A stretch of DNA of 64,000 bases, from positions 1 through 64,000 of the forward strand of contig MCFH01000073.1 of NCBI GenBank assembly GCA_002104945.1, given 5' to 3'. Of the stretch, positions 7,471 to 56,242 are shown in pieces. Under the pieces are notes generated by a model. The model saw only the letters and a list, made by a program, of their open reading frames with translations, did not search any database and was not told where the DNA came from. The DNA is from Piromyces finnis finn (Eukaryota; Fungi; Neocallimastigomycota). The first letter of the stretch is position 1. Every line of letters begins with the position of its first letter. The position numbers were made by a program, and so were the translations under genes.

Positions 7471-10206
7471 TATGATTGTTAATAATTAATTATAAATTAA
7501 TAAAAGTTTATAATAACAAAAAGAAAAGTTTTCACAATTATTTTGTTTAAAGAAAAAAAAAAAAAAAAAAAAAAAAAGACAGAAATGATTATATATATTT
7601 TATATATAATATATTATAATATATATAATATATATGATGAATTATTTTTTTATATAAAGTTTTTTTTAATTAAATATATTTTAATATAATTCATTATTTA
7701 ACTTTTCAGTTTGATTCTACATACACACCATCTTTTTTTTTTTTTAATTCCGTTTTTTATTTTATGTCATACTATTTATAATATATTTATTATATATTAA
7801 TAATATATTATTTAATAATTTTTTTTAGTATTATAAAGTGTATAATCCCTAAATAAATAAAATAAATTAACTTTTTAATATAAAGAATATAAAATATATT
7901 TTACCATATTTATATTTATATTTAATAATTAATATTAAATTAAATCACATCACATGATTCATCCACGACACAGAAATTATAAAATGTAATAATATATAAT
8001 GTACAATGTAATGAAATATAGTAATAAATAATAATATATCTGTTTAATACATAATAATGTAAAATGTAATGGAATGTAAATGTGATTGCTATTTTTTTAA
8101 AAAAAAAAGATCATCTTTTTAAAAACCATCAAAAAGATGAATGTCAAATTTAACATAAAATTTATTATTCAACTTTTATATTCATAATAAAGTTATATAT
8201 ATATATATATAAAAAGATATTTAATGAAGATGATTTATTTTATTAGAATAAAGAGATCATCTTTATTCTAATAAAAAAAAAAATTGAATGAGAGTTAACA
8301 CAACTTTTTTTTTTATAATCCTTAAAAAAATATTTATTTTCATTTGTTACTTTCTTTATATAAAATTATTTTTTAACATTTATTATGATCATTAAAAAAG
8401 AGTGGACTATTTCTTAGTATGTAACATTATTGTTATAATAATAATAGTAATAGTAGTGGTTAATATTTCTACTGCTGTTGCTATTATTAATATTATTATT
8501 ATTTGAATACTTCTTTTGCCTTCTCTTTTATTTTATCTTATTTTATTATTAAATTGATGAATATCTTTTATTTTTATATAAAATTTCTTATACATATAAA
8601 AAAAAAAAAGAAAAAATAAACTTCTATTTATACATAAGTAAATAAATAAAAAATGAAAGAGATAATGAATTCTAGGGATAATAAATAATAAAAAAAAGTT
8701 ATCTTTTATTATAAATTTATCTTTTTTTATTATCCCAATAATAATAGGAAATGATAATTCTTTTGTTATATTTTATTAGTATAGAATATCAATTACATTA
8801 TAAATTATATTACATTATTAATTAATTACATTTTAACTACATTATTTCATTTTTTATTAAAAATATGAGATGAAACAAAACCCAATAAGATTTAATCTAA
8901 AAAAAAGATAATCTATAAAATTATTTTTGATGAGATGAACTTTTACTTTTTTTTTTAATTATTAAAGCTTTTTTTTTAATAATAAAACATAAAAATAAAC
9001 AATTTATTATGAAAAGAAGGAATGAAAAGGATCTTACTATGTACCTTTAATAATTAAAGAATTGTTTTTTTTTTACTTTATAACTATAAATTAGTATAAA
9101 ATACATGACTATTTATGTGGCTATTTTATAAAATAGTTTTAATGTAATAAAATTCTTTACCATAAAAATCAAATGTAATATTACGCTTATGGCGTATAAT
9201 ATTAACGTAATTATATTCAATAAAAAAAATTTATTTAAAAAGTGGATGATTTATATTAAAAAGATAGTTGAAATTTGATAAGGAATTTTTGATAAGTAAA
9301 TTGATATTTGATATTAAAGTTTGAAATTTGACATGTTATAATATATTACAATATATTATAATATATTGTAAATGAATTAATTTATCCTATCAAAATATTA
9401 AAATTATAAAAATTTCAATGTAGTACAATACAACAATTATGTACAAAAATGTACAATCTTATTATTAAATATGAATTACAGTTTTTATGGAAGAACAAAT
9501 TAAAGGTAGAAAAGGGTAACTGTAACAATTTCCTCAAAAAAACAAAATATTATGATATATAAAAAAACTATTATAATAAAAGATACAGAATCTGTGTTAA
9601 TAAATAAAAATTATATAGATATATATAAAAATAACTGAACCACCACTAAAATATATTTAAAAAAAATTCATTATTATAAGTAAAAAAAAAAAGTTTAATA
9701 TTTTATGTAATAGTTGTTTATTTTATTTATTAACCATAACAAAAAGAAGAGTATTGTTATTATCAACTATATTAATTAATCTAATAAAGTATTTAAAAAA
9801 AAAAAAGCTTTAAAAATATTATAATTAATAAATAATCAAAAATAAAATAAAAATTATCTATTTTGATGTGTTAATTATAGGGTAAAACTAAGAAAGAATA
9901 TAATTATTAGAATTTACCTTTGAATGAATTTTTTTTTTTTTTTTAACAAAAAAGAAACATTAAATTTTTACAATAAAACATTTAATATAAAAAAAATAAA
10001 ATATAAATAATAAAAATATTCTTTTATTAAATCCTCTTTTTTAAAAAAATTATCAATCATGCTGGTTTTTAATTTTGAAAAAGATGTACATACTTACATT
10101 TTTACCTATATTTTTATATAATTGTATTTTACCTAATTATATTTAATTATATCTCAATGAAAAATTAAAAAAATAGACAAAATTAATCTATCTTTAAAAT
10201 ATACTT

Positions 10207-20420: not shown

Positions 20421-22646
20421 GAAATTTTCACCTATCTGATCTAAAAAATATTTTACTTTTAACTATTTTTGGAATCGGTCTCTAATAATATCAACACCAT
20501 TCAAGAGTATTTAAATAAGAATGGAAAACCAAGTGGTGGTCAGCCAGACCTAACCCCTTCAGTTGCCCCATCTACATCTACAAAATATGATTTGGATTTT
20601 GATGTAATAATGAGATCAAAATATTCCACTCCAATAAATCAAGTTCCAGATCCAGGTCTTTTTTCTGGTGATCCTCATGAAACAGAACTATTCTGTCAAA
20701 TTTGCGAAGATACTTTTAGCACTTATCCTAATAAACATATGATGGAAGAAGCTAAAATTAATTTTGTTAAAACAAGATTAAGAGGAATTGCTAGAACTTG
20801 GTATTTAAAAAGATACAGTGGAAATACTCATCCTTCTACAATGTTTGAATTATTAGTAGAATTAAAAAATGCTTTTCCAAATGTTTCAAGCAACAAATTA
20901 GCCAAGATTAAACTAAGAAAATTGAAACAAACATACGGAAAAATTAATGAATACATGGAAGAATTTAGATCATATATTCAATATTTTAACTCGATTCAAA
21001 AAGCTATTACTCTTATGTTTTATACTGGTCTTCATCCTAAGCATCAAGAAGATATTGAAAAATTATACGACTTTCCTACTACTCTCGAAGCTATTTTTAC
21101 AAGATGTATTTTATTTGAACAAATTAGTATTTCAAATTAAAAATTAAATCAAATTAATAATAAAGGTCATGGAAGAGAGAATTCCTTTTATAATAATAAT
21201 AACAACAATAATTACAACAATAATAATAGAAACAATTATCAAAAATATCACAATAATAATAATAACAATAATAATTTAAAATCTAATTAACCAGCTAATA
21301 ACAATAATAGTGGTAATAATAATAATTATTCTACTACAAGAACCCAAAAAACTTCATACAAAAATTTTTAAACAATGAACACCATAAGACGTCAATGGAT
21401 GTTCATAATACACCAAAAATTATTTATTATAATTTCCTATCTCTAGAAAACAAAGAAAATCTTAATTTAAATTCATTTTTAACCTTTAATTCATATATTC
21501 CAAAGGAATTCTTAAATAATAACTCTAATTTTATTACTAATTCACAAATAATTTGTAATTCAATGCTTGATTCTGGTTCTTCATGTAACTTTATTTCTAA
21601 CATATTTGTAGAAAAATATGGTTTAATTAAAAGAAAATTAAAAACAAATTAATTATAAAAGATATCAATGATTATGTTTATTTAAAATTTCAATTAAAGA
21701 TTTTTATCAAAAATAAATTTCATTTTATATCTTAAAGAAAAATTCTTAATTTCAGAACATATTCCTATGGATTTATTATTTGGAAATAAATTCATGAAAA
21801 AATTTAAGATTCATTTTAATCATAAAAATAGTCATTTATTGTAATAATTTTAAACTGTAAAGATATCAAACGCCTCAACTTGATATCTTTAATGTAACTT
21901 AAGCCACAAGTATTATTGTTTAAGTTATACGAATTATATTCAGAAAAAGAAAATGAGACATAATTTATTTATTAATAATTAAAGTTTAAAACAAAATAAA
22001 TTATTAATTTATTTTTAATGTTTAACAAGTAAATTAATATTCTCAATTTAAATCCCTAGTTTTAGTATTGTTTTTTTATAGAAATAGATAAATAATAAAT
22101 GATTAATATATCAATAATACATGGGCACATATTCAAATTGAATAGTACTTAATTTGAATTGCCAATTGTATTTTACTAAAAATAGTTATAGTTTAAATAT
22201 TTATTAATAATTAAGATTTTAGTGTAGATTTTAAATAATAATATATAAGAAATAAATAGTTATAATATAATATAAATGTATTTAAGAAAAATATAAATAG
22301 AAGATATTTTTCATCATTTTGATCGAACTTTCAAATCGAAATCGACCTTACGAATGAACAAAATAAGAAATCACAAGATCAAATTTAATTCGTTAAATAG
22401 GTTCAGTTAATACATTTTAAATAATTTTAATAACCTTATTAGTAATAGTAATTACTAAACATTAGATAGTTAAATTTAATATTATTATATAAATACATGT
22501 AAAAATTAGTTATTTTAAAAACTAGTTTTTTCTAGTTTTTTAATCGTTAATCACTATTATATAGTAAAAATTCTCATATAACTAAATTTTGAGGATTAAA
22601 AGAATTAATAATTAATAAAACAAGTTTTTTAAATAAACATCAAAAC

Positions 22647-23373
22647 TGTAAAAATTTTAAAATTTAAAACAGATTATAAAATTTTTTACAATAAAACAAA
22701 AAACACTAAATAAAATAAAAAATTAAAAACAAAACAAAATTTATTTATATCCTCTTTTATTTATTCTTATTTAGTTATTAACTAAACTATAGTCAATAAC
22801 AATTACATCGTTTAACTATGAAATTTTACATGTATTTATATTTTTTACAAATTATATTTTAATATACTATTCTATTTAATTATACATATATTCAATATAA
22901 AATAAACAAAACTAATTTAATACTAATTTAATTAAATAATAAAATAATAAAACTAAACTAAAACTAATTAAATACACTTTTGATTCAATTTGAGTAAACT
23001 ACAAATTGAATACAGTCCATGTATTACCTATATATTAATTAAATATTAATAATACTATTTATTATATATTTACTATTAAAAAATACTAATTTAAAACTAC
23101 GCTAAAGTTATTAAACTATTTTTAATTAAATAAGAACTTTTTAAGATTTAATTTGAATATTTAAAATATTTAAATTTAATTATCCATTAATTTAAATATT
23201 TATCCAAATTTCATTTCCAATTTTGATATTTTAAAATTAATATTTATTTAATTATTCCTTAAAATTTATATAATAAATTTTATAAATAATTTTTCATTAA
23301 AATATCAAAATTATTATTTAATAATTATTAATTAATTATTAAATAATTTAAAGATATATATTATATCTTTACA
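22647..23373 (-). mobile_element. Solo LTR, family R3 (about 727 bp), inserted in the left terminal repeat of the RT-RNase H element
   Basis: TG..CA termini; exact 5-bp TSD AAAAC (22642-22646 / 23374-23378); reverse complement of 30792-31532; the right repeat is uninterrupted at this position. Confidence 0.9.
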
Positions 23374-24168
23374 AAAACTATAAAAACATTATAAATAAGC
23401 GTGTTAAAAATAATTTCAAGTGTAAATTATCAAATAGTAACAATTATATAAAGATAACTAGAGAACTTAAGTAAACTAACGATAATAAGACCCTAAAAGA
23501 GGATTTATTACTCAATATATACGTAGATTTGGAAATAATTTAAGAAAATTTATCTTAGATCCGAATCCACAAACCAATTTAAAATACGATTTAGGTTGTA
23601 TTTTATATAGTTACAGTTGACAAGAATAAATCCAAGTATCAAGATTAATCTCTTGAAACCGGGACCAACTTAAAAAACTAGAAAAAACTACGAGTTATCT
23701 AGTTTTCGTTAATAATAAAACAATATCTACGGACGAAAGGCAAAAGGTAAGTCCTAGGCACAAATCATTAAAAAAAAAAAAAAAAAAGGCAACAAGTAAG
23801 TCCTTCACAGCCCAAATTTTATAATCGGCACCAAAAGCCAACTAACAACATTTTGTTAAAACACACAAGTAAATCTATAAATCAACCATTGTCCGAAAGT
23901 GAAGAATCCTCTGATTCGATATTTCACATACCAAAAAGAAAATCTATCAATATTTCGGGACAGTTATATTTAAATTATAATCAGCAAAGTATGCAGATGG
24001 GCAAAAATAATAAGGGAAAAGAGGCTGCTCAAAATTGAACAAAAATTACTCCAACAGAAACAAAAAAATCAAAGCTTTGTTATTTCTACTGACCATAAAG
24101 AAGGCCTTGAAGAATTTATTATAAAGGAAATAAAGAACCTACCACAAGAGTTACAAGAATTTAAAGAA

Positions 24169-26532
24169 GTGTTCGAATCTCCACCAAAAGGAAAAATATT
24201 TAATAGAAAGGAACAAAATTTAAATGCATACTTACCTTATGATAAAGAAAAAGTGAAACATCTACCAATGATGCCTCATATTCAATTAGATCAGAAACAA
24301 GAAGAAGCTTTGGAAAAGGAATTTCAAGAACTAGAAAATAACGGTAAAATAGAAAAAGTTAGAGCAAGCTCAGCCTGCAATGTATTTAACGTCCCAAAGA
24401 AGGATGGTACATTCAGAACAGTTTTCAATTATGTAATGGTAAACAACTGTTTACACCATAATAATTATCCGATTCCTAAAATTATGGAATTAGTCCACCG
24501 TGCTGCTCAGTTTAAATATCATATTTTATTAGATCTTAGAAATGCATATAATCAAATATATCTAGAGCCTAAATACCGCTTCCTTACTAGCTTTCGCTTT
24601 AGGAATCAAACTTATCAATGGAAGGTCCTTCCATTCGGTCTTTCAACCGCTCCCTCTATATTCCAGTCTATTCTAAATCTATTACTTAAGGACTATCTTA
24701 ACAAAGGCATCGACGTGTACCTAGACGATATCCATATTTATGCTCACAGCAAGGAAGAGTGTATAAAATTATGCGCCTATACCCTTGGGAAGTTCAAAAA
24801 TAATAATTTCTACTGTAAACTGGAAAAATGTTTATTTTTCCCAGAAACATTTGAATATTTAGGTTACAAAATTAGTTACGAAAAAATCCGCCCAATATCT
24901 AATAAACAGCTAAACATTAAGAAATGTTATACTCAAAAGGAATATCAACAGTTATATGGCTTCCTTAACTATTTTAAGGATTATATTAAAGACTTTACTA
25001 ATAAAACCAAAAATATCACCTTAGGTTTATCTAACAAAACTACTGCTTGGACTAACGAAATGGATAAAGAGCTAAATTATTATAAAAATCTCTTACCTAA
25101 CCTTCCAGAATTAGCGCCATTCAAACCTAATCACGATATTCTAATCCTAACCGACGCATCAGAAATCGGAATTGGAGCCGCAATTTTTCAAGCGGAGGCC
25201 ACCCATGTACATGTTCAAAACTACGTTTCAAATAACGTATACAAGAGTAATATTAATCGAGAAATTATCGAAAATCTTTTTGGTCATAAAAAAGGGACGT
25301 ATTCCGGACGTTATGGACGTAAAACTAATAACTCCGATAAAGCAAAAAATCGTGAAGACATAGAACCACCAATCAAATTAAATGAAGCTATGAATACTAT
25401 GGAAATTAAAAGAAATAACTTAGAAAAACTCAAAAAGTATTTAAAACCAATAGGATTCTACTCCAGGAAGCTCAACGCTACAGAAAGGAAATACTCTACT
25501 TTCGATAGAGAATTACTAGCCTTATCAGAAACTTTACTGCATTACAAGCTACTTTTACAACAAGGCCAAAAAATCTACTGTGCAACCGATCATAAGAACT
25601 TAGTAATTTACATTAACTCGGGATCAAAAGTTGAAACCAATCGAAAACTACGTTTATTTGAAAATATTTGCAACTTTAGCGTCATTCCTTGTTACATAGA
25701 AGGCAAAGATAATAAAATTGCCGATCTCTTATCTAGATTTATCAATATGGAAAACAGCTATGAAAACAACGACACAAATAACAATCCACAACAAGTTAAC
25801 AATATAGAGGAAGTTAACTCATTAGATTTCATCCTGAATGCTATAGAGCTCAAAGATAAAAAAAAAACAGAAGAAAATATTGATGAAAAGGAGAATATAG
25901 ATTTTAACGTATTTAAGGCCACCACTGAATCCTTACTTCAAGCAAATAAACAAATTGAACTAAAAGAATACCTATTTAAATGGTACCAAAATCAAGATAC
26001 CTTATTTAAGAACTTAAAGGAACAGGTTGTAAACTTATTAAAAGAAAATACTTACCTTGAAGAACAATATCGAAAACAAGTCAATTTAAGATGCGCCGAC
26101 TTAAAAGAAGTCTTAGGCCGCAAGGAACGATTTAATCAAGAAATAATCAATTTAAAAAAAGAAATACAACTTATACAAACTGGAAATAGCCAGATAGAAA
26201 CAAAAAGGAAATTAGAAAAATTGAATCAGAAAATAAATGATCTCAGATATGATTTAAACCCTAAGGCCGAACGAATCGAGCTTACTAAAAAAGTAAATAA
26301 AACGGAAAAACAGTTAGGAGAACTACAGAATGATATAGAAAATTTTAGAAACAAATTAGAACAAGTAAATAAAAGAATTGACGCATTAGTAATAGAAAAT
26401 GAATTGAAGGAAATATTCCCTGCCGCGGAAACTTTAATTACTAATGACCTGAAGAAAAGAAGGTTATCGAACTTTCAAATCGAAATCGACCTTACGAATG
26501 AACAAAATAAGAAATCACAAGATCAAATTTAA
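24169..26532 (+). CDS. Ty3/gypsy-type reverse transcriptase plus RNase H plus C-terminal coiled coil (frame open from about 23973; first ATG at 24268)
   Basis: RT motifs VPKKDG, LDLRNAYNQ, LPFGLSTAPSIFQ, YLDDI, YLGY; RNase H motifs TDAS, FYSRKL, DRELLA, TDHKNL, ADLLSR; then a K/E/Q/L heptad-rich tail of about 260 aa. No protease, HHCC or DDE motifs seen. Confidence 0.92.
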   Translation: MFESPPKGKIFNRKEQNLNAYLPYDKEKVKHLPMMPHIQLDQKQEEALEKEFQELENNGKIEKVRASSACNVFNVPKKDGTFRTVFNYVMVNNCLHHNNYPIPKIMELVHRAAQFKYHILLDLRNAYNQIYLEPKYRFLTSFRFRNQTYQWKVLPFGLSTAPSIFQSILNLLLKDYLNKGIDVYLDDIHIYAHSKEECIKLCAYTLGKFKNNNFYCKLEKCLFFPETFEYLGYKISYEKIRPISNKQLNIKKCYTQKEYQQLYGFLNYFKDYIKDFTNKTKNITLGLSNKTTAWTNEMDKELNYYKNLLPNLPELAPFKPNHDILILTDASEIGIGAAIFQAEATHVHVQNYVSNNVYKSNINREIIENLFGHKKGTYSGRYGRKTNNSDKAKNREDIEPPIKLNEAMNTMEIKRNNLEKLKKYLKPIGFYSRKLNATERKYSTFDRELLALSETLLHYKLLLQQGQKIYCATDHKNLVIYINSGSKVETNRKLRLFENICNFSVIPCYIEGKDNKIADLLSRFINMENSYENNDTNNNPQQVNNIEEVNSLDFILNAIELKDKKKTEENIDEKENIDFNVFKATTESLLQANKQIELKEYLFKWYQNQDTLFKNLKEQVVNLLKENTYLEEQYRKQVNLRCADLKEVLGRKERFNQEIINLKKEIQLIQTGNSQIETKRKLEKLNQKINDLRYDLNPKAERIELTKKVNKTEKQLGELQNDIENFRNKLEQVNKRIDALVIENELKEIFPAAETLITNDLKKRRLSNFQIEIDLTNEQNKKSQDQI

Positions 26533-28199
26533 TTCGTTAAATAGGTTCAGTTAATACATTTTAAATAATTTTAATAACCTTATTAGTAATAGTAATTACT
26601 AAACATTAGATAGTTAAATTTAATATTATTATATAAATACATGTAAAAATTAGTTATTTTAAAAACTAGTTTTTTCTAGTTTTTTAATCGTTAATCACTA
26701 TTATATAGTAAAAATTCTCATATAACTAAATTTTGAGGATTAAAAGAATTAATAATTAATAAAACAAGTTTTTTAAATAAACATCAAAACTATAAAAACA
26801 TTATAAATAAGCGTGTTAAAAATAATTTCAAGTGTAAATTATCAAATAGTAACAATTATATAAAGATATTTTTCATCATTTTATCGATGTAATTGTTATT
26901 AATAAAATTTCTATTATAAAAGATATTTTTAATAAAACAATTTTTATTTTTATTTTAAATTTAGTGTTATTGTAATAGAATAGATATCCTAATCTATTCT
27001 TTCTGTGTCAGCATTACATAAACACTTCAATAATAAGAATTTAAAAAATTTTTCAAAAAATTTAAAAATTTCTCATTCTAAAAAAGATTTTAATAATTCA
27101 TTTTCTGACAATACTAATAATAATTCTACTAATTTCTCTCATAAATCTAATTCTCAAGATAAAGATAATAATTCTACGTCTTTTAATAAGAGTGATATCA
27201 ATTATTTTATCCATTCATTTTTATCTGAAAATGTTGAAAATTTCTATGATGATGAAAAATGACCTAACCCTTATTATGGATGAAATCCCTAATAAATATA
27301 AAGACCTTGCTGTTGTTTTCAGCAAATCAAAAGCTGATATGTTACCACCACATCATTTAACTGATTGTAAAATAGTCCTAGAAAATGATGCCACTTTACA
27401 TTATGGACCTATCTATCCTTTGTCAAGACAAGAGGAAGAAGCCTTACAAGAGTTTTAATGAAAGTCTTAAAAAAGGTTTTATTAGGCCCTCTGAATCTCC
27501 TGCAGATTATCTTGTTGTTTTCCAGAAGAAAAAAGATGGCTCACTAAGGGTTTATATTAATTACAAAAAGTTAAACGCTGTAACAGTAAGGAATTCGTAC
27601 CCTTTACCTTTAATATCAGATAACATTGAAAGGGTTAAGGGTTCAAAAATTTTCACTAAATTGGATTTGAGATCAGCTTATAATTTGATAAGAATAAAAG
27701 AAGGTGATGAATATAAGACCGCTTTTAGAACAAGGTTTGGACATTACGAATATTTAGTAATACCATATGGATTAAAAAATGCTCCAGCAACATTTCAGTC
27801 ATTCATAAATTTATCCAAATATTATGCGAATATTTGGATAAATTTGTTATTTTATATGGATGATATTTTAATTTTCTCGGAAAATCTTAAAGACCATATC
27901 AATCATGTAAGATCTGTTTTAGAAAAATTAATACAAAATAACTTATGCAAATTTTGAAAAATGTGAATTTCATAAAAATAAAGTTGAATTCTTAGATTTC
28001 ACTATCTCAGATAATGGTATCTCTACTGATCCAAAGAAGATAGAAACTATTAAAGAATGGCCTAGACCAAAAGGTGTTAAAGATTTCAACACTTTCTTGG
28101 TCTTTGTAATTATTATAGAAGGTTTGTTAATAATTTTGCAAAAATTGCCAAACCTTCACATAATTTAACTAGGAAAAATGTTAAATTTTATTGGGATAA

Positions 28200-29340
28200 G
28201 ACAGAAATACTGATCCAATTAGTTTCCTTCTTAATATCATCGATATTATAATATTTATATTCTTCACTTTGACTTTGTACAACTTTTTCAACAAAGAGAA
28301 CATTATCAAGTTTTTTGACGATTTAGATAATTTCTGTAAAGATATCAAACGCCTCAGCTTGATATCTTTAATGTAACTTAAGCCACAAGTATTATTTTTT
28401 AAGTTACACAATTTATATTACAGAAAAAGAAAATGAGACATAATTTATTTATTAATAATTAAAGTTTGAAACAAAATAAATTATTAATTTTTAATGTTTT
28501 ACAAATAAATTAAATTTCTCAATTTAATTTCTTAGTTTTAGTATTGTTTTTGATAGAAAAAGATGAATAGTATATAAATAATAAATGATTAATATATAAA
28601 TAATACATGGGCACATATTCAAATTAAATAGTATTTGATTTGGATTGCCTATTTAATTTTACTAAAATAATTATAGTTTAAATATTTTATTAATAATTAA
28701 GATTTTAGTGTAGGTTTTAAATAATAATATATTTTAAATAGTTATAATATAATATAAATGTATTTAGGAAAAATATAAATAGAAGATATTTTTCATCATT
28801 TATCAATGTAATTGTTATTAATAAAATTTCTATTATAATAAAAGATATTTTTTATAAAACAATTTTTATTTTAATTATAGTGTTATTGTAATAGAATAGA
28901 TATCCTAATCTATTCTTTCAGTGTTCAACATTACAATTTCTGAAGAGAGGTAAACTCTAATTGCGAAATAATTAGTAATGGGGCAAAGATGACTAACTAA
29001 ATTTGATGTTATTGGAATTTCTTCCATTATTTCAGTTGAATTGGTGATGGAGCGCTTGAAATTTTCGTTCAAAACTTTTCTATTTTCGTTAATAAATCTA
29101 AATTTTCTTTTTTTTATTTTTGTCGTTGTTGCGTTTTATTAAATTTAAAAAATCCAATTCTTCTAATTTTTTATCAGGTTTACCGTTACCTAATACAAAT
29201 GTATGTTTATTTTCGTCAATAATGTTATAGATATCATTCATTCTATCATTTACAAGTTCATCTATTTTTTTATATATTTTTATTCTCAAAATTATATTTT
29301 TTATCAATCGCTTTTCTTTGAATAGAGACAATATAATATG
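28200..29340 (-). pseudogene. Degraded unknown intronless coding sequence interrupted by the R2 LTR
   Basis: Coding-like frames on both sides of the LTR (KHTFVLGNGKPDKKLEELDF...; LDNVLFVEKVVQSQSEEYKYYNIDDIKK). No family recognised. Confidence 0.35.
28335..28935 (+). mobile_element. Solo LTR, family R2
   Basis: TGTAAAG...CATTACA; exact 5-bp TSD ATTTC (28330-28334 / 28936-28940). Confidence 0.92.
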
Positions 29341-43043: not shown

Positions 43044-46000
43044 TAGAAGTAATTATTTCTATAGTTGTAGATTTATTATTAAAATAAGATAGCTTTTTCA
43101 GATCAAATAACTTTAAATTGATTGATATTGCTGTAACTGTCTTTTCATTTATTAAAGGGATCCAAAAGTAACCAAACGAGAATTCATTCTTCAAAACAAT
43201 CCATATTTTATATAAATATCTTATTTACTATTTATGTAAACAATAAATAAAATACTTATAAATGTGTTTAATAATAAATCTACAGAATTTGGCAATGTAA
43301 AAGAAGAAAAATCATATCAATTTTTTATTTGTTAAAAGTAACTATTGCCATAGCTGTAGATTTATTATTAAAACAAGACAGCTTTTTCAGATTAAATAAC
43401 TTTAAATTGATTGATATTGCTGTAACTGTCTTTTCATTTATTAAAGGGATCCAAAAGTAACCAAACGAGAATTCATTCTTCAAAACAATCCATATTTTAT
43501 ATAAATATCTTATTTACTATTTATGTAAACAATAAATAAAATACTTATAAATGTGTTTAATAATAAATCTACAGAACATAGCATAGTAAAAAGAGAAGTA
43601 GAATATAAGAATAGATTTTTAGAAGTAACTATTGCCATAGCTGTAGATTTATTATTAAAACAAGACAGCTTTTTCAGGTCAAATAACTTTAAATTGATTG
43701 ATATTGCTGTAACTGTCTTTTCATTTATTAAAGGGATCCAAAAGTAACCAAACGAGAATTCATTCTTCAAAACAATCCATATTTTATATAAATATCTTAT
43801 TTACTATTTATGTAAACAATAAATAAAATACTTATAAATGTGTTTAATAATAAATCTACAGAACATAGCATAGTAAAAAGAGAAGTAGAATATAAGAATA
43901 GATTTTTAGAAGTAACTATTGCCATTGCTGTAGATTTATTATTAAAACAAGACAGCTTTTTCAGGTCAAATAACTTTAAATTGATTGATATTGCTGTAAC
44001 TGTCTTTTCATTTATTAAAGGGATCCAAAAGTAACCAAACGAGAATTCATTCTTCAAAACAATCCATATTTTATATAAATATCTTATTTACTATTTATGT
44101 AAACAATAAATAAAATACTTATAAATGTGTTTAATAATAAATCTACAGAACATAGCATAGTAAAAAGAGAAGTAGAATATAAGAATAGATTTTTAGAAGT
44201 AACTATTGCCATAGCTGTAGATTTATTATTAAAACAAGACAGCTTTTTCAGGTCAAATAACTTTAAATTGATTGATATTGCTGTAACTGTCTTTTCATTA
44301 ATTAAAGGGATCCAAAAGTAACCAAACGAGAATTCATTCTTCAAAACAATCCATATTTTATATAAATATCTTATTTACTATTTATGTAAACAATAAATAA
44401 AATACTTATAAATGTGTTTAATAATAAATCTACAGAACATAGCATAGTAAAAAGAGAAGTAGAATATAAGAATAGATTTTTAGAAGTAACTATTGCCATA
44501 GCTGTAGATTTATTATTAAAACAAGACAGCTTTTTCAGATCAAATAACTTTAAATTGATTGATATTGCTGTAACTGTCTTTTCATTTATTAAAGGGATCC
44601 AAAAGTAACCAAACGAGAATTCATTCTTCAAAACAATCCATATTTTATATAAATATCTTATTTACTATTTATGTAAACAATAAATAAAATACTTATAAAT
44701 GTGTTTAATAATAAATCTACAGAACATAGCATAGTAAAAAGAGAAGTAGAATATAAGAATAGATTTTTAGAAGTAACTATTGCCATTGCTGTAGATTTAT
44801 TATTAAAACAAGACAGCTTTTTCAGGTCAAATAACTTTAAATTGATTGATATTGCTGTAACTGTCTTTTCATTTATTAAAGGGATCCAAAAGTAACCAAA
44901 CGAGAATTCATTCTTCAAAACAATCCATATTTTATATAAATATCTTATTTACTATTTATGTAAACAATAAATAAAATACTTATAAATGTGTTTAATAATA
45001 AATCTACAGAACATAGCATAGTAAAAAGAGAAGTAGAATATAAGAATAGATTTTTAGAAGTAACTATTGCCATAGCTGTAGATTTATTATTAAAACAAGA
45101 CAGCTTTTTCAGGTCAAATAACTTTAAATTGATTGATATTGCTGTAACTGTCTTTTCATTTATTAAAGGGATCCAAAAGTAACCAAACGAGAATTCATTC
45201 TTCAAAACAATCCATATTTTATATAAATATCTTATTTACTATTTATGTAAACAATAAATAAAATACTTATAAATGTGTTTAATAATAAATCTACAGAACA
45301 TAGCATAGTAAAAAGAGAAGTAGAATATAAGAATAGATTTTTAGAAGTAACTATTGCCATAGCTGTAGATTTATTATTAAAACAAGACAGCTTTTTCAGA
45401 TCAAATAACTTTAAATTGATTGATATTGCTGTAACTGTCTTTTCATTTATTAAAGGGATCCAAAAGTAACCAAACGAGAATTCATTCTTCAAAACAATCC
45501 ATATTTTATATAAATATCTTATTTACTATTTATGTAAACAATAAATAAAATACTTATAAATGTGTTTAATAATAAATCTACAGAACATAGCATAGTAAAA
45601 AGAGAAGTAGAATATAAGAATAGATTTTTAGAAGTAACTATTGCCATAGCTGTAGATTTATTATTAAAACAAGACAGCTTTTTCAGATCAAATAACTTTA
45701 AATTGATTGATATTGCTGTAACTGTCTTTTCATTTATTAAAGGGATCCAAAAGTAACCAAACGAGAATTCATTCTTCAAAACAATCCATATTTTATATAA
45801 ATATCTTATTTACTATTTATGTAAACAATAAATAAAATACTTATAAATGTGTTTAATAATAAATCTACAGAACATAGCATAGTAAAAAGAGAAGTAGAAT
45901 ATAAGAATAGATTTTTAGAAGTAACTATTGCCATTGCTGTAGATTTATTATTAAAACAAGACAGCTTTTTCAGGTCAAATAACTTTAAATTGATTGATAT

Positions 46001-49000
46001 TGCTGTAACTGTCTTTTCATTTATTAAAGGGATCCAAAAGTAACCAAACGAGAATTCATTCTTCAAAACAATCCATATTTTATATAAATATCTTATTTAC
46101 TATTTATGTAAACAATAAATAAAATACTTATAAATGTGTTTAATAATAAATCTACAGAACATAGCATAGTAAAAAGAGAAGTAGAATATAAGAATAGATT
46201 TTTAGAAGTAACTATTGCCATAGCTGTAGATTTATTATTAAAACAAGACAGCTTTTTCAGATCAAATAACTTTAAATTGATTGATATTGCTGTAACTGTC
46301 TTTTCATTTATTAAAGGGATCCAAAAGTAACCAAACGAGAATTCATTCTTCAAAACAATCCATATTTTATATAAATATCTTATTTACTATTTATGTAAAC
46401 AATAAATAAAATACTTATAAATGTGTTTAATAATAAATCTACAGAAATAGCATAGTAAAAAGAGAAGTAAATATAAAATAGATTTTTAGAAGTAACTATT
46501 GCCATAGCTGTAGATTTATTATTAAAACAAGACAGCTTTTTCAGATCAAATAACTTTAAATTGATTGATATTGCTGTAACTGTCTTTTCATTTATTAAAG
46601 GGATCCAAAAGTAACCAAACGAGAATTCATTCTTCAAAACAATCCATATTTTATATAAATATCTTATTTACTATTTATGTAAACAATAAATAAAATACTT
46701 ATAAATGTGTTTAATAATAAATCTACAGAACATAGCATAGTAAAAAGAGAAGTAGAATATAAGAATAGATTTTTAGAAGTAACTATTGCCATAGCTGTAG
46801 ATTTATTATTAAAACAAGACAGCTTTTTCAGATCAAATAACTTTAAATTGATTGATATTGCTGTAACTGTCTTTTCATTTATTAAAGGGATCCAAAAGTA
46901 ACCAAACGAGAATTCATTCTTCAAAACAATCCATATTTTATATAAATATCTTATTTACTATTTATGTAAACAATAAATAAAATACTTATAAATGTGTTTA
47001 ATAATAAATCTACAGAACATAGCATAGTAAAAAGAGAAGTAGAATATAAGAATAGATTTTTAGAAGTAACTATTGCCATTGCTGTAGATTTATTATTAAA
47101 ACAAGACAGCTTTTTCAGGTCAAATAACTTTAAATTGATTGATATTGCTGTAACTGTCTTTTCATTTATTAAAGGGATCCAAAAGTAACCAAACGAGAAT
47201 TCATTCTTCAAAACAATCCATATTTTATATAAATATCTTATTTACTATTTATGTAAACAATAAATAAAATACTTATAAATGTGTTTAATAATAAATCTAC
47301 AGAACATAGCATAGTAAAAAGAGAAGTAGAATATAAGAATAGATTTTTAGAAGTAACTATTGCCATAGCTGTAGATTTATTATTAAAACAAGACAGCTTT
47401 TTCAGGTCAAATAACTTTAAATTGATTGATATTGCTGTAACTGTCTTTTCATTTATTAAAGGGATCCAAAAGTAACCAAACGAGAATTCATTCTTCAAAA
47501 CAATCCATATTTTATATAAATATCTTATTTACTATTTATGTAAACAATAAATAAAATACTTATAAATGTGTTTAATAATAAATCTACAGAACATAGCATA
47601 GTAAAAAGAGAAGTAGAATATAAGAATAGATTTTTAGAAGTAACTATTGCCATAGCTGTAGATTTATTATTAAAACAAGACAGCTTTTTCAGATCAAATA
47701 ACTTTAAATTGATTGATATTGCTGTAACTGTCTTTTCATTTATTAAAGGGATCCAAAAGTAACCAAACGAGAATTCATTCTTCAAAACAATCCATATTTT
47801 ATATAAATATCTTATTTACTATTTATGTAAACAATAAATAAAATACTTATAAATGTGTTTAATAATAAATCTACAGAACATAGCATAGTAAAAAGAGAAG
47901 TAGAATATAAGAATAGATTTTTAGAAGTAACTATTGCCATTGCTGTAGATTTATTATTAAAACAAGACAGCTTTTTCAGGTCAAATAACTTTAAATTGAT
48001 TGATATTGCTGTAACTGTCTTTTCATTTATTAAAGGGATCCAAAAGTAACCAAACGAGAATTCATTCTTCAAAACAATCCATATTTTATATAAATATCTT
48101 ATTTACTATTTATGTAAACAATAAATAAAATACTTATAAATGTGTTTAATAATAAATCTACAGAACATAGCATAGTAAAAAGAGAAGTAGAATATAAGAA
48201 TAGATTTTTAGAAGTAACTATTGCCATTGCTGTAGATTTATTATTAAAACAAGACAGCTTTTTCAGGTCAAATAACTTTAAATTGATTGATATTGCTGTA
48301 ACTGTCTTTTCATTTATTAAAGGGATCCAAAAGTAACCAAACGAGAATTCATTCTTCAAAACAATCCATATTTTATATAAATATCTTATTTACTATTTAT
48401 GTAAACAATAAATAAAATACTTATAAATGTGTTTAATAATAAATCTACAGAACATAGCATAGTAAAAAGAGAAGTAGAATATAAGAATAGATTTTTAGAA
48501 GTAACTATTGCCATAGCTGTAGATTTATTATTAAAACAAGACAGCTTTTTCAGATCAAATAACTTTAAATTGATTGATATTGCTGTAACTGTCTTTTCAT
48601 TTATTAAAGGGATCCAAAAGTAACCAAACGAGAATTCATTCTTCAAAACAATCCATATTTTATATAAATATCTTATTTACTATTTATGTAAACAATAAAT
48701 AAAATACTTATAAATGTGTTTAATAATAAATCTACAGAACATAGCATAGTAAAAAGAGAAGTAGAATATAAGAATAGATTTTTAGAAGTAACTATTGCCA
48801 TGCTGTAGATTTATTATTAAAACAAGACAGCTTTTTCAGGTCAAATAACTTTAAATTGATTGATATTGCTGTAACTGTCTTTTCATTTATTAAAGGGATC
48901 CAAAAGTAACCAAACGAGAATTCATTCTTCAAAACAATCCATATTTTATATAAATATCTTATTTACTATTTATGTAAACAATAAATAAAATACTTATAAA

Positions 49001-52000
49001 TGTGTTTAATAATAAATCTACAGAACATAGCATAGTAAAAAGAGAAGTAGAATATAAGAATAGATTTTTAGAAGTAACTATTGCCATTGCTGTAGATTTA
49101 TTATTAAAACAAGACAGCTTTTTCAGGTCAAATAACTTTAAATTGATTGATATTGCTGTAACTGTCTTTTCATTTATTAAAGGGATCCAAAAGTAACCAA
49201 ACGAGAATTCATTCTTCAAAACAATCCATATTTTATATAAATATCTTATTTACTATTTATGTAAACAATAAATAAAATACTTATAAATGTGTTTAATAAT
49301 AAATCTACAGAACATAGCATAGTAAAAAGAGAAGTAGAATATAAGAATAGATTTTTAGAAGTAACTATTGCCATTGCTGTAGATTTATTATTAAAACAAG
49401 ACAGCTTTTTCAGGTCAAATAACTTTAAATTGATTGATATTGCTGTAACTGTCTTTTCATTTATTAAAGGGATCCAAAAGTAACCAAACGAGAATTCATT
49501 CTTCAAAACAATCCATATTTTATATAAATATCTTATTTACTATTTATGTAAACAATAAATAAAATACTTATAAATGTGTTTAATAATAAATCTACAGAAC
49601 ATAGCATAGTAAAAAGAGAAGTAGAATATAAGAATAGATTTTTAGAAGTAACTATTGCCATAGCTGTAGATTTATTATTAAAACAAGACAGCTTTTTCAG
49701 ATCAAATAACTTTAAATTGATTGATATTGCTGTAACTGTCTTTTCATTTATTAAAGGGATCCAAAAGTAACCAAACGAGAATTCATTCTTCAAAACAATC
49801 CATATTTTATATAAATATCTTATTTACTATTTATGTAAACAATAAATAAAATACTTATAAATGTGTTTAATAATAAATCTACAGAATTGGCAATGTAAAA
49901 GAAGAAAAATATATCAATTTTTTATTTTTAGAAGTAACTATTGCCATAGCTGTAGATTTATTATTAAAACAAGACAGCTTTTTCAGATCAAATAACTTTA
50001 AATTGATTGATATTGCTGTAACTGTCTTTTCATTAATTAAAGGGATCCAAAAGTAACCAAACGAGAATTCATTCTTCAAAACAATCCATATTTTATATAA
50101 ATATCTTATTTACTATTTATGTAAACAATAAATAAAATACTTATAAATGTGTTTAATAATAAATCTACAGAACATAGCATAGTAAAAAGAGAAGTAGAAT
50201 ATAAGAATAGATTTTTAGAAGTAACTATTGCCATAGCTGTAGATTTATTATTAAAACAAGACAGCTTTTTCAGGTCAAATAACTTTAAATTGATTGATAT
50301 TGCTGTAACTGTCTTTTCATTTATTAAAGGGATCCAAAAGTAACCAAACGAGAATTCATTCTTCAAAACAATCCATATTTTATATAAATATCTTATTTAC
50401 TATTTATGTAAACAATAAATAAAATACTTATAAATGTGTTTAATAATAAATCTACAGAACATAGCATAGTAAAAAGAGAAGTAGAATATAAGAATAGATT
50501 TTTAGAAGTAACTATTGCCATAGCTGTAGATTTATTATTAAAACAAGACAGCTTTTTCAGATCAAATAACTTTAAATTGATTGATATTGCTGTAACTGTC
50601 TTTTCATTTATTAAAGGGATCCAAAAGTAACCAAACGAGAATTCATTCTTCAAAACAATCCATATTTTATATAAATATCTTATTTACTATTTATGTAAAC
50701 AATAAATAAAATACTTATAAATGTGTTTAATAATAAATCTACAGAACATAGCATAGTAAAAAGAGAAGTAGAATATAAGAATAGATTTTTAGAAGTAACT
50801 ATTGCCATAGCTGTAGATTTATTATTAAAACAAGACAGCTTTTTCAGATCAAATAACTTTAAATTGATTGATATTGCTGTAACTGTCTTTTCATTTATTA
50901 AAGGGATCCAAAAGTAACCAAACGAGAATTCATTCTTCAAAACAATCCATATTTTATATAAATATCTTATTTACTATTTATGTAAACAATAAATAAAATA
51001 CTTATAAATGTGTTTAATAATAAATCTACAGAACATAGCATAGTAAAAAGAGAAGTAGAATATAAGAATAGATTTTTAGAAGTAACTATTGCCATTGCTG
51101 TAGATTTATTATTAAAACAAGACAGCTTTTTCAGGTCAAATAACTTTAAATTGATTGATATTGCTGTAACTGTCTTTTCATTTATTAAAGGGATCCAAAA
51201 GTAACCAAACGAGAATTCATTCTTCAAAACAATCCATATTTTATATAAATATCTTATTTACTATTTATGTAAACAATAAATAAAATACTTATAAATGTGT
51301 TTAATAATAAATCTACAGAACATAGCATAGTAAAAAGAGAAGTAGAATATAAGAATAGATTTTTAGAAGTAACTATTGCCATTGCTGTAGATTTATTATT
51401 AAAACAAGACAGCTTTTTCAGGTCAAATAACTTTAAATTGATTGATATTGCTGTAACTGTCTTTTCATTTATTAAAGGGATCCAAAAGTAACCAAACGAG
51501 AATTCATTCTTCAAAACAATCCATATTTTATATAAATATCTTATTTACTATTTATGTAAACAATAAATAAAATACTTATAAATGTGTTTAATAATAAATC
51601 TACAGAACATAGCATAGTAAAAAGAGAAGTAGAATATAAGAATAGATTTTTAGAAGTAACTATTGCCATTGCTGTAGATTTATTATTAAAACAAGACAGC
51701 TTTTTCAGGTCAAATAACTTTAAATTGATTGATATTGCTGTAACTGTCTTTTCATTTATTAAAGGGATCCAAAAGTAACCAAACGAGAATTCATTCTTCA
51801 AAACAATCCATATTTTATATAAATATCTTATTTACTATTTATGTAAACAATAAATAAAATACTTATAAATGTGTTTAATAATAAATCTACAGAACATAGC
51901 ATAGTAAAAAGAGAAGTAGAATATAAGAATAGATTTTTAGAAGTAACTATTGCCATAGCTGTAGATTTATTATTAAAACAAGACAGCTTTTTCAGATCAA

Positions 52001-53590
52001 ATAACTTTAAATTGATTGATATTGCTGTAACTGTCTTTTCATTAATTAAAGGGATCCAAAAGTAACCAAACGAGAATTCATTCTTCAAAACAATCCATAT
52101 TTTATATAAATATCTTATTTACTATTTATGTAAACAATAAATAAAATACTTATAAATGTGTTTAATAATAAATCTACAGAACATAGCATAGTAAAAAGAG
52201 AAGTAGAATATAAGAATAGATTTTTAGAAGTAACTATTGCCATAGCTGTAGATTTATTATTAAAACAAGACAGCTTTTTCAGGTCAAATAACTTTAAATT
52301 GATTGATATTGCTGTAACTGTCTTTTCATTTATTAAAGGGATCCAAAAGTAACCAAACGAGAATTCATTCTTCAAAACAATCCATATTTTATATAAATAT
52401 CTTATTTACTATTTATGTAAACAATAAATAAAATACTTATAAATGTGTTTAATAATAAATCTACAGAACATAGCATAGTAAAAAGAGAAGTAGAATATAA
52501 GAATAGATTTTTAGAAGTAACTATTGCCATTGCTGTAGATTTATTATTAAAACAAGACAGCTTTTTCAGGTCAAATAACTTTAAATTGATTGATATTGCT
52601 GTAACTGTCTTTTCATTTATTAAAGGGATCCAAAAGTAACCAAACGAGAATTCATTCTTCAAAACAATCCATATTTTATATAAATATCTTATTTACTATT
52701 TATGTAAACAATAAATAAAATACTTATAAATGTGTTTAATAATAAATCTACAGAACATAGCATAGTAAAAAGAGAAGTAGAATATAAGAATAGATTTTTA
52801 GAAGTAACTATTGCCATTGCTGTAGATTTATTATTAAAACAAGACAGCTTTTTCAGGTCAAATAACTTTAAATTGATTGATATTGCTGTAACTGTCTTTT
52901 CATTTATTAAAGGGATCCAAAAGTAACCAAACGAGAATTCATTCTTCAAAACAATCCATATTTTATATAAATATCTTATTTACTATTTATGTAAACAATA
53001 AATAAAATACTTATAAATGTGTTTAATAATAAATCTACAGAACATAGCATAGTAAAAAGAGAAGTAGAATATAAGAATAGATTTTTAGAAGTAACTATTG
53101 CCATAGCTGTAGATTTATTATTAAAACAAGACAGCTTTTTCAGATCAAATAACTTTAAATTGATTGATATTGCTGTAACTGTCTTTTCATTTATTAAAGG
53201 GATCCAAAAGTAACCAAACGAGAATTCATTCTTCAAAACAATCCATATTTTATATAAATATCTTATTTACTATTTATGTAAACAATAAATAAAATACTTA
53301 TAAATGTGTTTAATAATAAATCTACAGAACATAGCATAGTAAAAAGAGAAGTAGAATATAAGAATAGATTTTTAGAAGTAACTATTGCCATAGCTGTAGA
53401 TTTATTATTAAAACAAGACAGCTTTTTCAGATCAAATAACTTTAAATTGATTGATATTGCTGTAACTGTCTTTTCATTAATTAAAGGGATCCAAAAGTAA
53501 CCAAACGAGAATTCATTCTTCAAAACAATCCATATTTTATATAAATATCTTATTTACTATTTATTTAAATAATAAATAAAATACTTATAA
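43044..53590. repeat. Tandem satellite array, 287-bp unit, about 36-37 copies
   Basis: ORF-track period of 287 bp; one GGATCC and one GAATTC per unit; near-identical units with a few dimorphic sites. Confidence 0.98.
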
Positions 53591-56149: not shown

Positions 56150-56242
56150 GCTCGTGTAGCCTAGAGGTTTAAGGCGTCGTGCTTATAAGGGTGATCCTCT
56201 TATGCAACGCGAAGATCGCGGGTTCGACCCCCGCCATGAGCA
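56150..56242 (+). tRNA. tRNA-Ile (anticodon UAU) with a 19-nt intron (about 56188-56206)
   Basis: Acceptor GCTCGTG/CATGAGC, D arm GCCT/AGGC, anticodon arm TCGTG-CTTATA^A-CGCGA, T arm GCGGG-TTCGACC-CCCGC; resembles fungal tRNA-Ile(UAU). Confidence 0.92.

Follow-up and report, generated by a model that had tools for sequence, protein, structure and literature searches.

An insert with direct terminal repeats

The window analysed here, 64,000 nt of contig MCFH01000073.1 of Piromyces finnis, contains at 22322-26868 a true insertion bounded by two identical 403-bp direct repeats. Comparison of the repeat copies piece by piece gave 0 mismatches over 325 + 83 nt, and the distance from unit to unit is 3412 bp. 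The left copy is split by a nested solo LTR, and the insertion as a whole interrupts a host gypsy LTR (copy A), of which a second copy (copy B) is uninterrupted.

22322-26868, + strand: element as it stands, 4547 bp with the nested solo LTR counted in
22322-22646, + strand: left terminal repeat, first piece, 325 nt, equal to 26466-26790
23374-23456, + strand: left terminal repeat, second piece, 83 nt, equal to 26786-26868
26466-26868, + strand: right terminal repeat, 403 nt
22647-23373, + strand: nested solo LTR of another gypsy family with TG..CA ends, 727 bp, splitting the left repeat
21855-22320, + strand: host gypsy LTR copy A, left part, 85-99% identical to copy B at 28334-28801
26869-27008, + strand: host gypsy LTR copy A, right part
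28334-28924, + strand: host gypsy LTR copy B, uninterrupted, with the empty site at 28784-28801

A sequence-only reading of this DNA had described a two-repeat insert composed of a 3412-bp unit and a 403-bp redundancy, and lacking TG..CA ends. The identity and spacing of the repeats confirmed the former, and the latter holds as well, since the repeat starts with ATCGAA and ends with AAGATA. Judging from its alignment with a longer relative, the right repeat is probably an LTR shortened on its 3' side. The nested solo LTR has a 5-bp target duplication of its own (AAAAC at 22642-22646 and 23374-23378) and matches 31532-30792 of the minus strand at 92% identity. An assembly artefact, in which the 403-bp duplication would not be present in the genome, has next to no probability, because only the left repeat holds the nested 727-bp LTR with its duplication, and because the insert is bounded by a duplicated host-LTR target whose empty site is known at 28784-28801 and in other copies. 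The locus is rich in ordinary gypsy elements with integrase-type 5-bp duplications. An Rfam search of 21800-27100 found no family.

Insertion junctions

22302-22320, no strand: target-site duplication, left copy (AGATATTTTTCATCATTTT), with one extra G (22321) before the element
26864-26882, no strand: target-site duplication, right copy, overlapping the element end by 5 nt at its start

The left part of host LTR copy A terminates in the left copy of this duplication. Fourteen nucleotides of the duplication are unambiguous, and it reaches up to 20 nt when the AAGATA common to the target and the 3' end of the element is included, as compared with 5 bp for the nested gypsy LTR at the same locus. 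The junction thus has a 6-bp microhomology (AAGATA) on the 3' side of the element and one extra base at the left.

The window copy is the only insertion with both ends and a clean empty site present. Of the related P. finnis copies described below, the long copy L047 is inserted in an R3-type LTR without a duplication and without its 5' part, and its right end extends at least 66 nt beyond that of the window copy, into leader-homologous sequence (a 28-nt homology). Copy L021 is devoid of the left repeat and of approximately 160 nt of the leader; no target duplication above shuffles was found for it in either way tested, and a 14-mer common to its right flank and the window leader was not significant. 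The right ends of three copies fall within approximately 70 nt of one another. Both L021 and L047 are old, and their ends may have been shaped by later deletions. A candidate 14/15-nt duplication at the P0002 copy (L010) was dropped, since L057 shows that the supposed 3' flank is the next element unit. With a duplication of 14-20 bp, microhomology, no TG..CA and variable ends, the insertion signature does not look integrase-made, and on this point the earlier interpretation is supported.

One open frame for reverse transcriptase, RNase H and a coiled-coil tail

23991-26532, + strand: polyprotein gene remnant, an open RT-RNase H-coiled-coil frame with one ~3.3-kb internal deletion compared to L021
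24391-24873, + strand: reverse transcriptase domain with YLDD present (PF00078, E 1e-27; model pLDDT ~90)
25048-25626, + strand: RNase H domain of Ty3 type (PF17919 + PF17917), with an insert of ~55 residues, modelled as disordered
25897-26526, + strand: C-terminal coiled-coil tail at the usual place of integrase, predicted helices with no globular fold

The single open frame is listed at 24169-26532 (787 aa) with the Pfam domains RVT_1, RT_RNaseH_2 and RT_RNaseH; it is open from 23974, and the first in-frame ATG does not occur before codon 34. In the structure model, long helices are predicted to span residues 577-786 (577-671, 675-695, 698-749 and 754-786), and Pfam gave only weak coiled-coil family matches for this tail. 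The domains and the modelled helices bear out the single uninterrupted RT, RNase H and coiled-coil ORF that had been reported, and the right repeat begins inside the frame, 21-22 codons ahead of the stop, where about 22 had been counted. Pfam found no gag, protease, integrase, tyrosine recombinase or GIY-YIG domain in the window copy. The tail has a pN/pS of 0.17 compared to L021, and RT-RNase H a pN of 0.069 against a pS of 0.77; judging from these ratios, both the tail and RT-RNase H are kept by purifying selection.

The best PDB sequence matches were those of Ty3 (polyprotein 7q5b, 198.6 bits; RT 4ol8, 197.1 bits), whereas the caulimovirus RT in the PDB (8r0s) reached 94.1 bits. Foldseek placed the Ty3 and caulimovirus RTs both on top (TM 0.78 on target for cauliflower mosaic virus RT), and fold comparison does not separate them. 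By sequence similarity, RT-RNase H is Ty3-like and not caulimovirus-like, so that of the suggested Ty3-related RT without integrase and with caulimovirus affinity, the first part stands and the affinity is not supported (198.6 vs 94.1 bits).

Longer relatives with protease and a putative Gag, and no integrase

By comparison with its relatives, the window copy is a young, internally deleted member of a gypsy-type family of Neocallimastigomycota. Longer relatives were found at two more P. finnis loci, in Neocallimastix lanati and in gut metagenomes, and carry approximately 3.3 kb extra upstream of RT-RNase H-coiled-coil. This additional part comprises ORF A, then a coiled-coil region that is a putative Gag, and finally an aspartic protease. 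The P. finnis copies L021 and L047 could be aligned with L048 of N. lanati over ORF A, putative Gag and protease as well as over RT and RNase H. The full family unit thus runs from a non-coding region with promoter and leader through ORF A, coiled-coil/putative Gag, aspartic protease, RT and RNase H to the coiled-coil tail, with the end of the coding region overlapping the start of the terminal repeat. In the window copy the ~3.3-kb deletion has removed most of ORF A, the coiled-coil/putative Gag region and the protease; splicing was rejected as its origin, the borders showing no GT..AG when inspected by eye. In L057 the order is head-to-tail (RT-RNase H-tail, 577 nt non-coding, ORF A and onwards), a partial tandem, and arrangements exceeding one unit are found in this copy and in the window copy, which supports the earlier interpretation in this respect. 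The three P. finnis copies differ from one another by approximately 23-25% in DNA, with synonymous sites saturated and the protein strongly constrained.

The protease of L057 matches Asp_protease_2 with 30.1 bits against a Pfam cut-off of 24.3, and the corresponding region of L021 carries a D-S-G motif; hhalign of the protease region with a Pfam-positive gypsy protease gave a weak match (probability 11%). Neither Pfam nor the PDB sequences gave a match to the putative Gag region, whose AlphaFold model is all-helical, with a pLDDT of 42 that is too poor for a fold search. Gag-like and protease profiles returned nothing meaningful against PDB sequences, and neither ORF A nor the first 970 residues of L021, L025 and L057 gave any Pfam match, be it to a movement protein, a zinc-knuckle capsid or another family. 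ORF A and the coiled-coil N-terminal region have no known match.

Integrase (rve, Integrase_H2C2) was found by Pfam in neither the window ORF, L021, L057 nor the C-terminal tail, and in at least five diverged lineages, 44-78% identical, RNase H is followed by the coiled coil and the stop. Judged from the recovered sequences, lack of integrase is a family trait. The P0001 lineage (L001-L009, L052, L061) adjoins on its 5' side an unrelated LTR ending in ...CTTTACA; the upstream part of the lineage may thus be concealed by a nested insertion, and its candidacy as a second form with RT-RNase H-tail only was set aside. When the Gag/protease half of L021 was used for a word-based search, only its own gene model was recovered, one metagenome scan gave ordinary gypsy RTs only (~30% identity), and an IMG/VR scan with the ORF gave no relative. 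All recovered contigs are embedded in fungal repeats.

These results extend the earlier description of an integrase-less element from one copy to the family, and restrict its companion, the lack of gag and protease, to the window copy, for the longer relatives have a putative Gag and, in L057, a protease above threshold. The sequence-only reading had also stated that gag, protease, integrase and TG..CA LTRs in other copies would mark the insert as an ordinary gypsy with an internal deletion; that picture is half right, because the relatives carry a putative gag and a protease but neither integrase nor TG..CA ends. A non-autonomous gypsy derivative that borrows its integrase from a different gypsy family, or an ordinary gypsy element missing integrase in this copy alone, would fit the dependence of a window copy without Gag and protease on other copies, and a locus full of gypsy elements that make 5-bp duplications. 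We nevertheless consider it very unlikely, as integrase is missing in every lineage recovered and the replacement tail is conserved, while TG..CA is absent, the duplication is 14-20 bp and the ends vary among copies.

Polypurine tract, candidate promoter and long-range pairing

26451-26463, + strand: polypurine tract GAAGAAAAGAAGG, 13 nt, 2 nt upstream of the right repeat
22486-22499, + strand: TATA-like box in the repeat, with a second copy at 26630-26643; the core TATAAATA lies 35 nt upstream of arm 1
22523-22543, + strand: arm 1 of a long-range pairing, with a second copy at 26667-26687; 21/21 complementary to 23670-23690
23670-23690, + strand: arm 2, pairing with arm 1, a candidate site for self-priming or else for the stem that closes a panhandle in the leader
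23457-23990, + strand: leader, with arm 2 and a second purine run at 23770-23789

Both a primer binding site and a polypurine tract had been reported missing. The former holds, in that no tRNA-type primer site was found after the repeat (the window has one doubtful tRNA), while the latter does not, given the 13-nt tract at 26451-26463. Purine runs of at least 11 nt occur only six times in the 3412-nt unit, and a repeat start 2 nt after one of them has a chance probability of approximately 0.7%. The L021 copy retains the tract. Its counterpart in L047 consists of A and G throughout but is interrupted ahead of the repeat. Since the tract doubles as coding sequence (KKRR), there is a second explanation for its conservation.

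Arm 2 lies approximately 390 nt downstream of arm 1 and 213 nt past the repeat end. The duplex of the two arms has an energy of -26.1 kcal/mol compared to -12.2 +/- 2.4 in shuffles, and the 15-nt core of arm 1 occurs three times in the window where 0.04 would be expected; the first 30 nt after the repeat, by comparison, paired with the repeat no better than shuffles. The leader is homologous to that of L021 from ~23617 on, and the same TATA-like box with 35-38 nt spacing is present in L021, L057 and L048. The positions of the box and of both arms are conserved; two base pairs differ in a compensatory way between L057 and L048, and in P. finnis the arms have another sequence. Self-primed elements of the Tf1 type have an RNA whose 5' region can pair with a site further downstream. 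With arm 2 located 213 nt beyond the repeat, self-priming in this family would need the right repeat to be truncated, as the one 28-nt homology in L047 suggests.

These signals bear on target-primed (nick-primed) reverse transcription, carried out either by the RT of the element itself or by a LINE enzyme, in which the RNA 3' end would anneal through microhomology to the nicked target and a template jump would produce the left 403 bp as a partial upstream copy. In Penelope-like elements, pseudo-LTRs are such upstream partial copies. Microhomology on the 3' side of the element with an extra base on the 5' side, the long duplication (14-20 bp), relatives without 5' parts, the partial tandem of L057, and three right ends within ~70 nt, like variable RNA 3' ends, are all compatible with this process. 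However, the left end lies 2 nt past the polypurine tract (~0.7% by chance), which argues for plus-strand DNA primed at the tract and not for a random stop, and it lies approximately 195 nt upstream of the likely RNA start. Moreover, there is no poly(A) and no endonuclease domain, and the RT is that of an LTR element accompanied by a protease and a putative Gag, thus implying particle-based replication. We therefore regard target priming as rather improbable.

Proposed replication and capture by host repair

The anatomy of the insert, the architecture of the family, its lack of integrase, selection on RT-RNase H and the tail, the junctions and the conserved pairing are the observations to be explained, and we think it probable that they reflect an integrase-less LTR-type (Ty3/gypsy-type) retroelement, here an internally deleted copy, that was captured by host repair. 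Transcription would start approximately 30 nt past the TATA-like box in the repeat, near arm 1, and the 5' arm of the RNA would pair with the arm ~390 nt downstream, in what may be Tf1-like self-priming or a leader panhandle. The polypurine tract would prime plus-strand DNA and so fix the left repeat end. Host repair would then join the DNA to a chromosomal break without integrase processing, with microhomology, while the loss of element ends and the target duplication would vary from case to case. In the window copy, the left end would be intact and the right repeat probably shortened by approximately 210 bp. Lacking Gag and protease, this copy could be made only with the proteins of a complete relative.

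The same junctions could stem from an endogenised episomal, pararetrovirus-like agent with extrachromosomal circular or concatemeric DNA, whose chromosomal copies would be accidental captures from a periodic template, the window copy then being 1.12 units long. A family without integrase speaks for this, as do the ~23-25% divergence and protein constraint, which fit independent captures from a replicating population. Element ends at differing positions of the unit with duplications from none to 14-20 bp, and the arrangements of more than one unit in the window and L057, also conform to it. Plant pararetroviruses have a compact unit and a structured leader with a long-range closing stem, and the family likewise shows a compact unit with a single non-coding region, its structured leader being closed by such a stem. 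On the other hand, the RT sequence is Ty3-like and not caulimovirus-like, Pfam found no movement-protein or other caulimovirid domain, IMG/VR holds no relative, and all recovered contigs lie within fungal repeats. In addition, linear LTR-flanked cDNA with nibbled ends fits the same junction data, and recombination also yields tandem LTR-element structures, as described in a published report (PMC11899658). We hence consider such an agent unlikely, though with more than a token chance. That a Metaviridae-derived lineage in anaerobic gut fungi has abandoned integration and persists as an extrachromosomal reverse-transcribing replicon, its chromosomal copies being accidental captures, is in our view similarly doubtful; if true, fungi would have their own counterpart of plant pararetroviruses, with an origin separate from that of Caulimoviridae.

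Comparison with known elements

The family shares with Ty3/gypsy elements (Metaviridae) the Ty3-type RT and RNase H, a retropepsin upstream of RT in full copies, direct terminal repeats that include a TATA-like box, and a polypurine tract bordering the right repeat on its inner side. In contrast to these elements, it has no integrase, chromodomain or zinc-finger integrase N-terminus but a conserved coiled-coil tail instead, its ends are not TG..CA, its duplication is 14-20 bp or absent, and its long N-terminal ORF A and coiled-coil region are without known match. Complementarity of the RNA 5' region to a downstream site is shared with self-priming elements of the Tf1/Tf2 type. Transcripts of Tf1-type elements begin with bases that can pair with a site immediately following the 5' LTR, whereas the complementary site of the window copy is not adjacent to the repeat end.

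Similarities to Caulimoviridae include the protease-RT-RNase H order without integrase, the compact layout with one non-coding region and a structured leader, and a similar RT fold; endogenous caulimovirid copies in plants also have variable ends and lengths of more than one unit. Yet in sequence the RT is half as similar to theirs as to that of Ty3, the host is fungal, and the family, known here from assembled contigs alone, has no movement protein, other caulimovirid domain or tRNA-type primer site. Penelope-like elements resemble the insert in an upstream partial copy made up of the ORF 3' end and 3' non-coding region, in variable duplications and in copies without 5' parts. They and non-LTR elements differ in RT class, for the family combines its RT with RNase H, protease and a putative Gag and has no GIY-YIG or other endonuclease domain; furthermore, the repeat start coincides here with a polypurine tract. 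Like LARD/TRIM-like derivatives, the window copy lost structural genes and protease, kept both repeats and was still copied, the repeats being identical, but unlike them it retains an intact RT-RNase H-tail frame. DIRS-like elements differ, as the insert has no recombinase domain, simple direct repeats and a target duplication. Fungal retroplasmids are mitochondrial plasmids with a primitive RT without RNase H, whereas the present RT-RNase H is of LTR-element type and the copy lies in a nuclear scaffold amid gypsy elements.

Integrase-independent capture at breaks occurs with yeast Ty1 cDNA at double-strand breaks and in the integration of hepadnaviral linear DNA. By analogy, the junction microhomology, extra bases, truncated ends and variable or absent duplication of the family resemble such events, which are a side route in those systems and would be the sole route to the chromosome here. 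To our knowledge, integrase is carried by all recognised LTR-type retroelements except plant pararetroviruses, and this family would therefore represent a second, independent integrase loss; our literature search found no description of such elements. Its Gag-like, protease, RT and RNase H parts appear to be kept under selection, with a tail replacing integrase and with repair-type junctions, and the family may thus offer a concrete system for how reverse-transcribing elements persist without integrase. It also bears on the recognition of endogenous copies of such agents in fungal genomes. In the present annotation of P. finnis and N. lanati, gene models that cover pieces of these elements are labelled hypothetical proteins.

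An integrase-less insert in a host LTR

The insert described in the sequence-only reading is real, as direct repeats, a duplicated target and an empty site are all present in the window (G+C approximately 20%). The elements of the insertion are as follows:

22322-22646 plus 23374-23456: left direct repeat, in two pieces
22647-23373: nested solo LTR of 727 bp with TG..CA ends and a 5-bp duplication (AAAAC), interrupting the left repeat
26466-26868: right direct repeat, 403 bp
28334-28924: uninterrupted copy of the host LTR, showing the empty site, as do further copies

The left repeat, compared piece by piece (325 and 83 nt) with the right repeat, showed 0 mismatches. The nested solo LTR is 92% identical to window 31532-30792 on the opposite strand. 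The host of the window copy is an LTR of another gypsy element. The target duplication comprises 14 nt unambiguously, or 20 nt when counting AAGATA, which is common to the target and the 3' end of the element, and the left junction carries one extra G. An assembly artefact, raised in the same reading as a possible origin of the duplicated 403 bp, is excluded by the duplicated target together with the nested LTR, which brings a duplication of its own.

The open frame encodes a Ty3-like reverse transcriptase

24169-26532 (open from 23974): open frame with RVT_1, RT_RNaseH_2 and RT_RNaseH

The frame has kept YLDD and the acidic residues of RNase H, and its first 33 codons contain no in-frame ATG. 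An AlphaFold model (35 sequences) was confident for RT-RNase H and showed only long helices beyond residue 577, a region for which Pfam gave only weak matches to coiled-coil families. In the PDB sequence search, Ty3 came out on top (198.6 and 197.1 bits) and the cauliflower mosaic virus RT (8r0s) scored 94.1 bits; in Foldseek, 8r0s and Ty3 shared the top rank without separation, and in a viral structure library caulimovirid polymerases were matched at approximately 20% identity. Public gene models over 24169-26532 and over two other P. finnis loci with family copies, L021 and L047, are fragments only, annotated as "hypothetical proteins" (P0131 of 169 aa, P0124, P0271 and P0273).

Longer relatives and the origin of the window copy

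The copy in L021 (scaffold MCFH01000048.1) is 77.6% identical to the window copy in the RT-RNase H-tail region, and here a 1530-residue ORF (L021 5224-9816) carries RT-RNase H at its C-terminus, with ORF A (148 residues, from 4756) upstream in the same frame and the tail in a separate ORF after RT-RNase H. The L021 reading frame is broken at two points, by an in-frame stop and by a frameshift. The part upstream of RT comprises a long stretch resembling a coiled coil, an all-helical region that is conserved and considered here a putative Gag (Gag-like), and a retropepsin signature (D-S-G, then downstream I-I-L-x-D-D-L). A third P. finnis copy, in L047, shares 75.6% identity with L021 across 5.7 kb, and the same parts recur in a copy from Neocallimastix lanati (L048; gene models P0275, P0277) and in the metagenome copies L022, L025 and L057, the protease piece of L057 exceeding the Pfam threshold (Asp_protease_2, 30.1 bits vs a cut-off of 24.3).

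The leader of the window copy is homologous to the L021 leader and the start of ORF A. By this homology the window copy is a deletion derivative, in which a single internal deletion of approximately 3.3 kb has taken out the protease and the Gag-like region along with most of ORF A. Since Gag and protease are absent from it, the window copy must have been produced with the help of a complete relative.

ORF A and the ORF that follows it (ORF B, 1530 residues in L021) are in one frame with a single stop between them at the homologous place in L021 (4756-9816) and in the N. lanati lineage (L025 802-4332, L048 9119-12649), and they are continuous in L047 (5610 onward). Such a stop could be leaky, like that between retroviral gag and pol, or it could reflect two independent defects.

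A coiled-coil tail in place of an integrase

The order RNase H, tail (coiled-coil or low-complexity), stop is common to the window copy, L021, L047, the P0001 lineage (860 aa, 58% identical), the P0028 copy and the P0002/L057 lineage (44%), and no integrase, tyrosine recombinase or endonuclease domain was found in any family ORF. When the window copy is compared with L021, synonymous sites prove saturated (pS 0.77) against a pN of 0.069 in RT-RNase H, and pN/pS in the coiled-coil tail is 0.17. As the tail takes the place of an integrase in every lineage and both RT-RNase H and the tail are under selection, the lineages of this family have long been replicating with an integrase-less gene set.

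Two other gypsy-type ORFs in the N. lanati locus L048 (4010-7792 and 15159-19225, minus strand), with 31-34% identity to the window RT, stop soon after RNase H, an integrase being absent within the ORF itself.

Candidate signals for priming and transcription

A 13-nt polypurine run stops 2 nt short of the right repeat; purine runs of at least 11 nt occur six times in the unit, giving a chance of approximately 0.7% for such placement. The run, which doubles as coding sequence, is retained in L021, and the homologous stretch in L047 is still purine-rich and interrupted ahead of the repeat start. Another purine run (window 23770-23789; 18 A followed by GG), located 80 nt downstream of arm 2 listed below, may serve as an additional site of plus-strand priming or represent mere low complexity.

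The repeat and leader of the window copy contain three further signals:

22486-22499 and 26630-26643: TATA-like box in the repeat, its core (TATAAATA) beginning 35 nt upstream of arm 1
22523-22543: arm 1, 21 nt, in the repeat
23670-23690: arm 2, in the leader, a perfect complement of arm 1

The duplex of the two arms was calculated at -26.1 kcal/mol, compared to -12.2 +/- 2.4 in shuffles, and the arms are 394 nt apart when the nested LTR is subtracted. Identical arms are retained in L021. L057 and L048 have the same order of box, arm 1 and arm 2 at the homologous place, with an arm sequence differing from that of P. finnis: the L057 arms (2277-2293 and 2679-2695) are 385 nt apart and 17/17 complementary, and the L048 arms (8675-8689 and 9085-9099) are 395 nt apart and 15/15 complementary. 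From L057 and L048 only, RNAalifold predicted the closing stem unprompted, with two compensatory pairs. This long-range stem encloses a leader of approximately 430 nt, and no Rfam family matches it.

In self-primed fungal gypsy elements of the Tf1 type, the 5' end of the transcript pairs with the primer site, and with the transcript ends as inferred here, the order of box, arm 1 and arm 2 in the family would correspond to their layout. Alternatively, the arm pairing may be read as the long leader hairpin of plant pararetroviruses. Should arm 2 serve as the primer site, a complete repeat would measure approximately 615 bp. ARAGORN reported one tRNA-like gene with undetermined anticodon (window 56150-56242), probably a spurious result of A+T-rich sequence.

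The left end set by the polypurine run, the identity of the repeats and the layout of promoter and pairing point to retrovirus-type reverse transcription, which a family enzyme would carry out.

Junctions of other copies and the route into the chromosome

The window copy is the single insertion for which both ends and a clean empty site are available. The long copy in L047 sits within an R3-type LTR, the type nested in the left repeat of the window copy, and since its flanks correspond to R3 positions 1-227 and 229-521, a target duplication is absent. This copy lacks everything upstream of mid ORF A, and its right end extends beyond the end point of the window repeat, where 28 nt are homologous to window 23494-23522 (score 39 vs 21.2 +/- 2.9 in shuffles, maximum 35). 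Judged from this continued homology, the 403-bp right repeat of the window copy is probably a truncated LTR. The L021 copy begins at the equivalent of window 23617, without a left repeat, and ends near the right end of the window copy; no significant target duplication was found for it. L057 shows a head-to-tail arrangement exceeding one unit.

The absence of an integrase, ends that are not TG..CA, a 14-20 bp duplication with microhomology, and the differing end positions in other copies suggest that chromosomal joining would proceed through host repair of a break and not through an integrase. At one and the same locus, the duplication of the window copy (14-20 bp) contrasts with that of the nested gypsy LTR (5 bp). 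The same data would fit a periodic extrachromosomal template from which pieces were captured, as in the sequence-only proposal of an endogenised pararetrovirus-like or circular element, and also nick-primed reverse transcription with a template jump. We rank both below host repair on three grounds: the RT resembles that of Ty3, the assembled contigs give no sign of an episome, and the polypurine tract marks the position of the left end. In the literature searched such elements were nowhere described, in anaerobic fungi or elsewhere, which falls short of proving novelty.

Elsewhere in L047 (2120-2337), another LTR of the host family contains 216 bp from the interior of the element (RNase H region), reversed in orientation. 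The fragment is 94% identical to window ~25440-25664, flanked by a 41-bp duplication and 5-nt microhomology, and could equally well stem from a repair-type capture or from a template switch at the DNA level or during replication.

Family copies also adjoin an unrelated gypsy LTR at its end (...CTTTACA) in L002 (1-265), L048 (up to 8454) and L052 (4720-5159), which suggests that this gypsy family inserted repeatedly, nested, into elements of the family described here. The unrelated LTR masks where the P0001 and N. lanati copies truly begin on their 5' side.

In the window itself, 43044-53600 is occupied by a 287-bp satellite (36.8 tandem copies, 98% identity), which accounts for the flat profile of base composition there.
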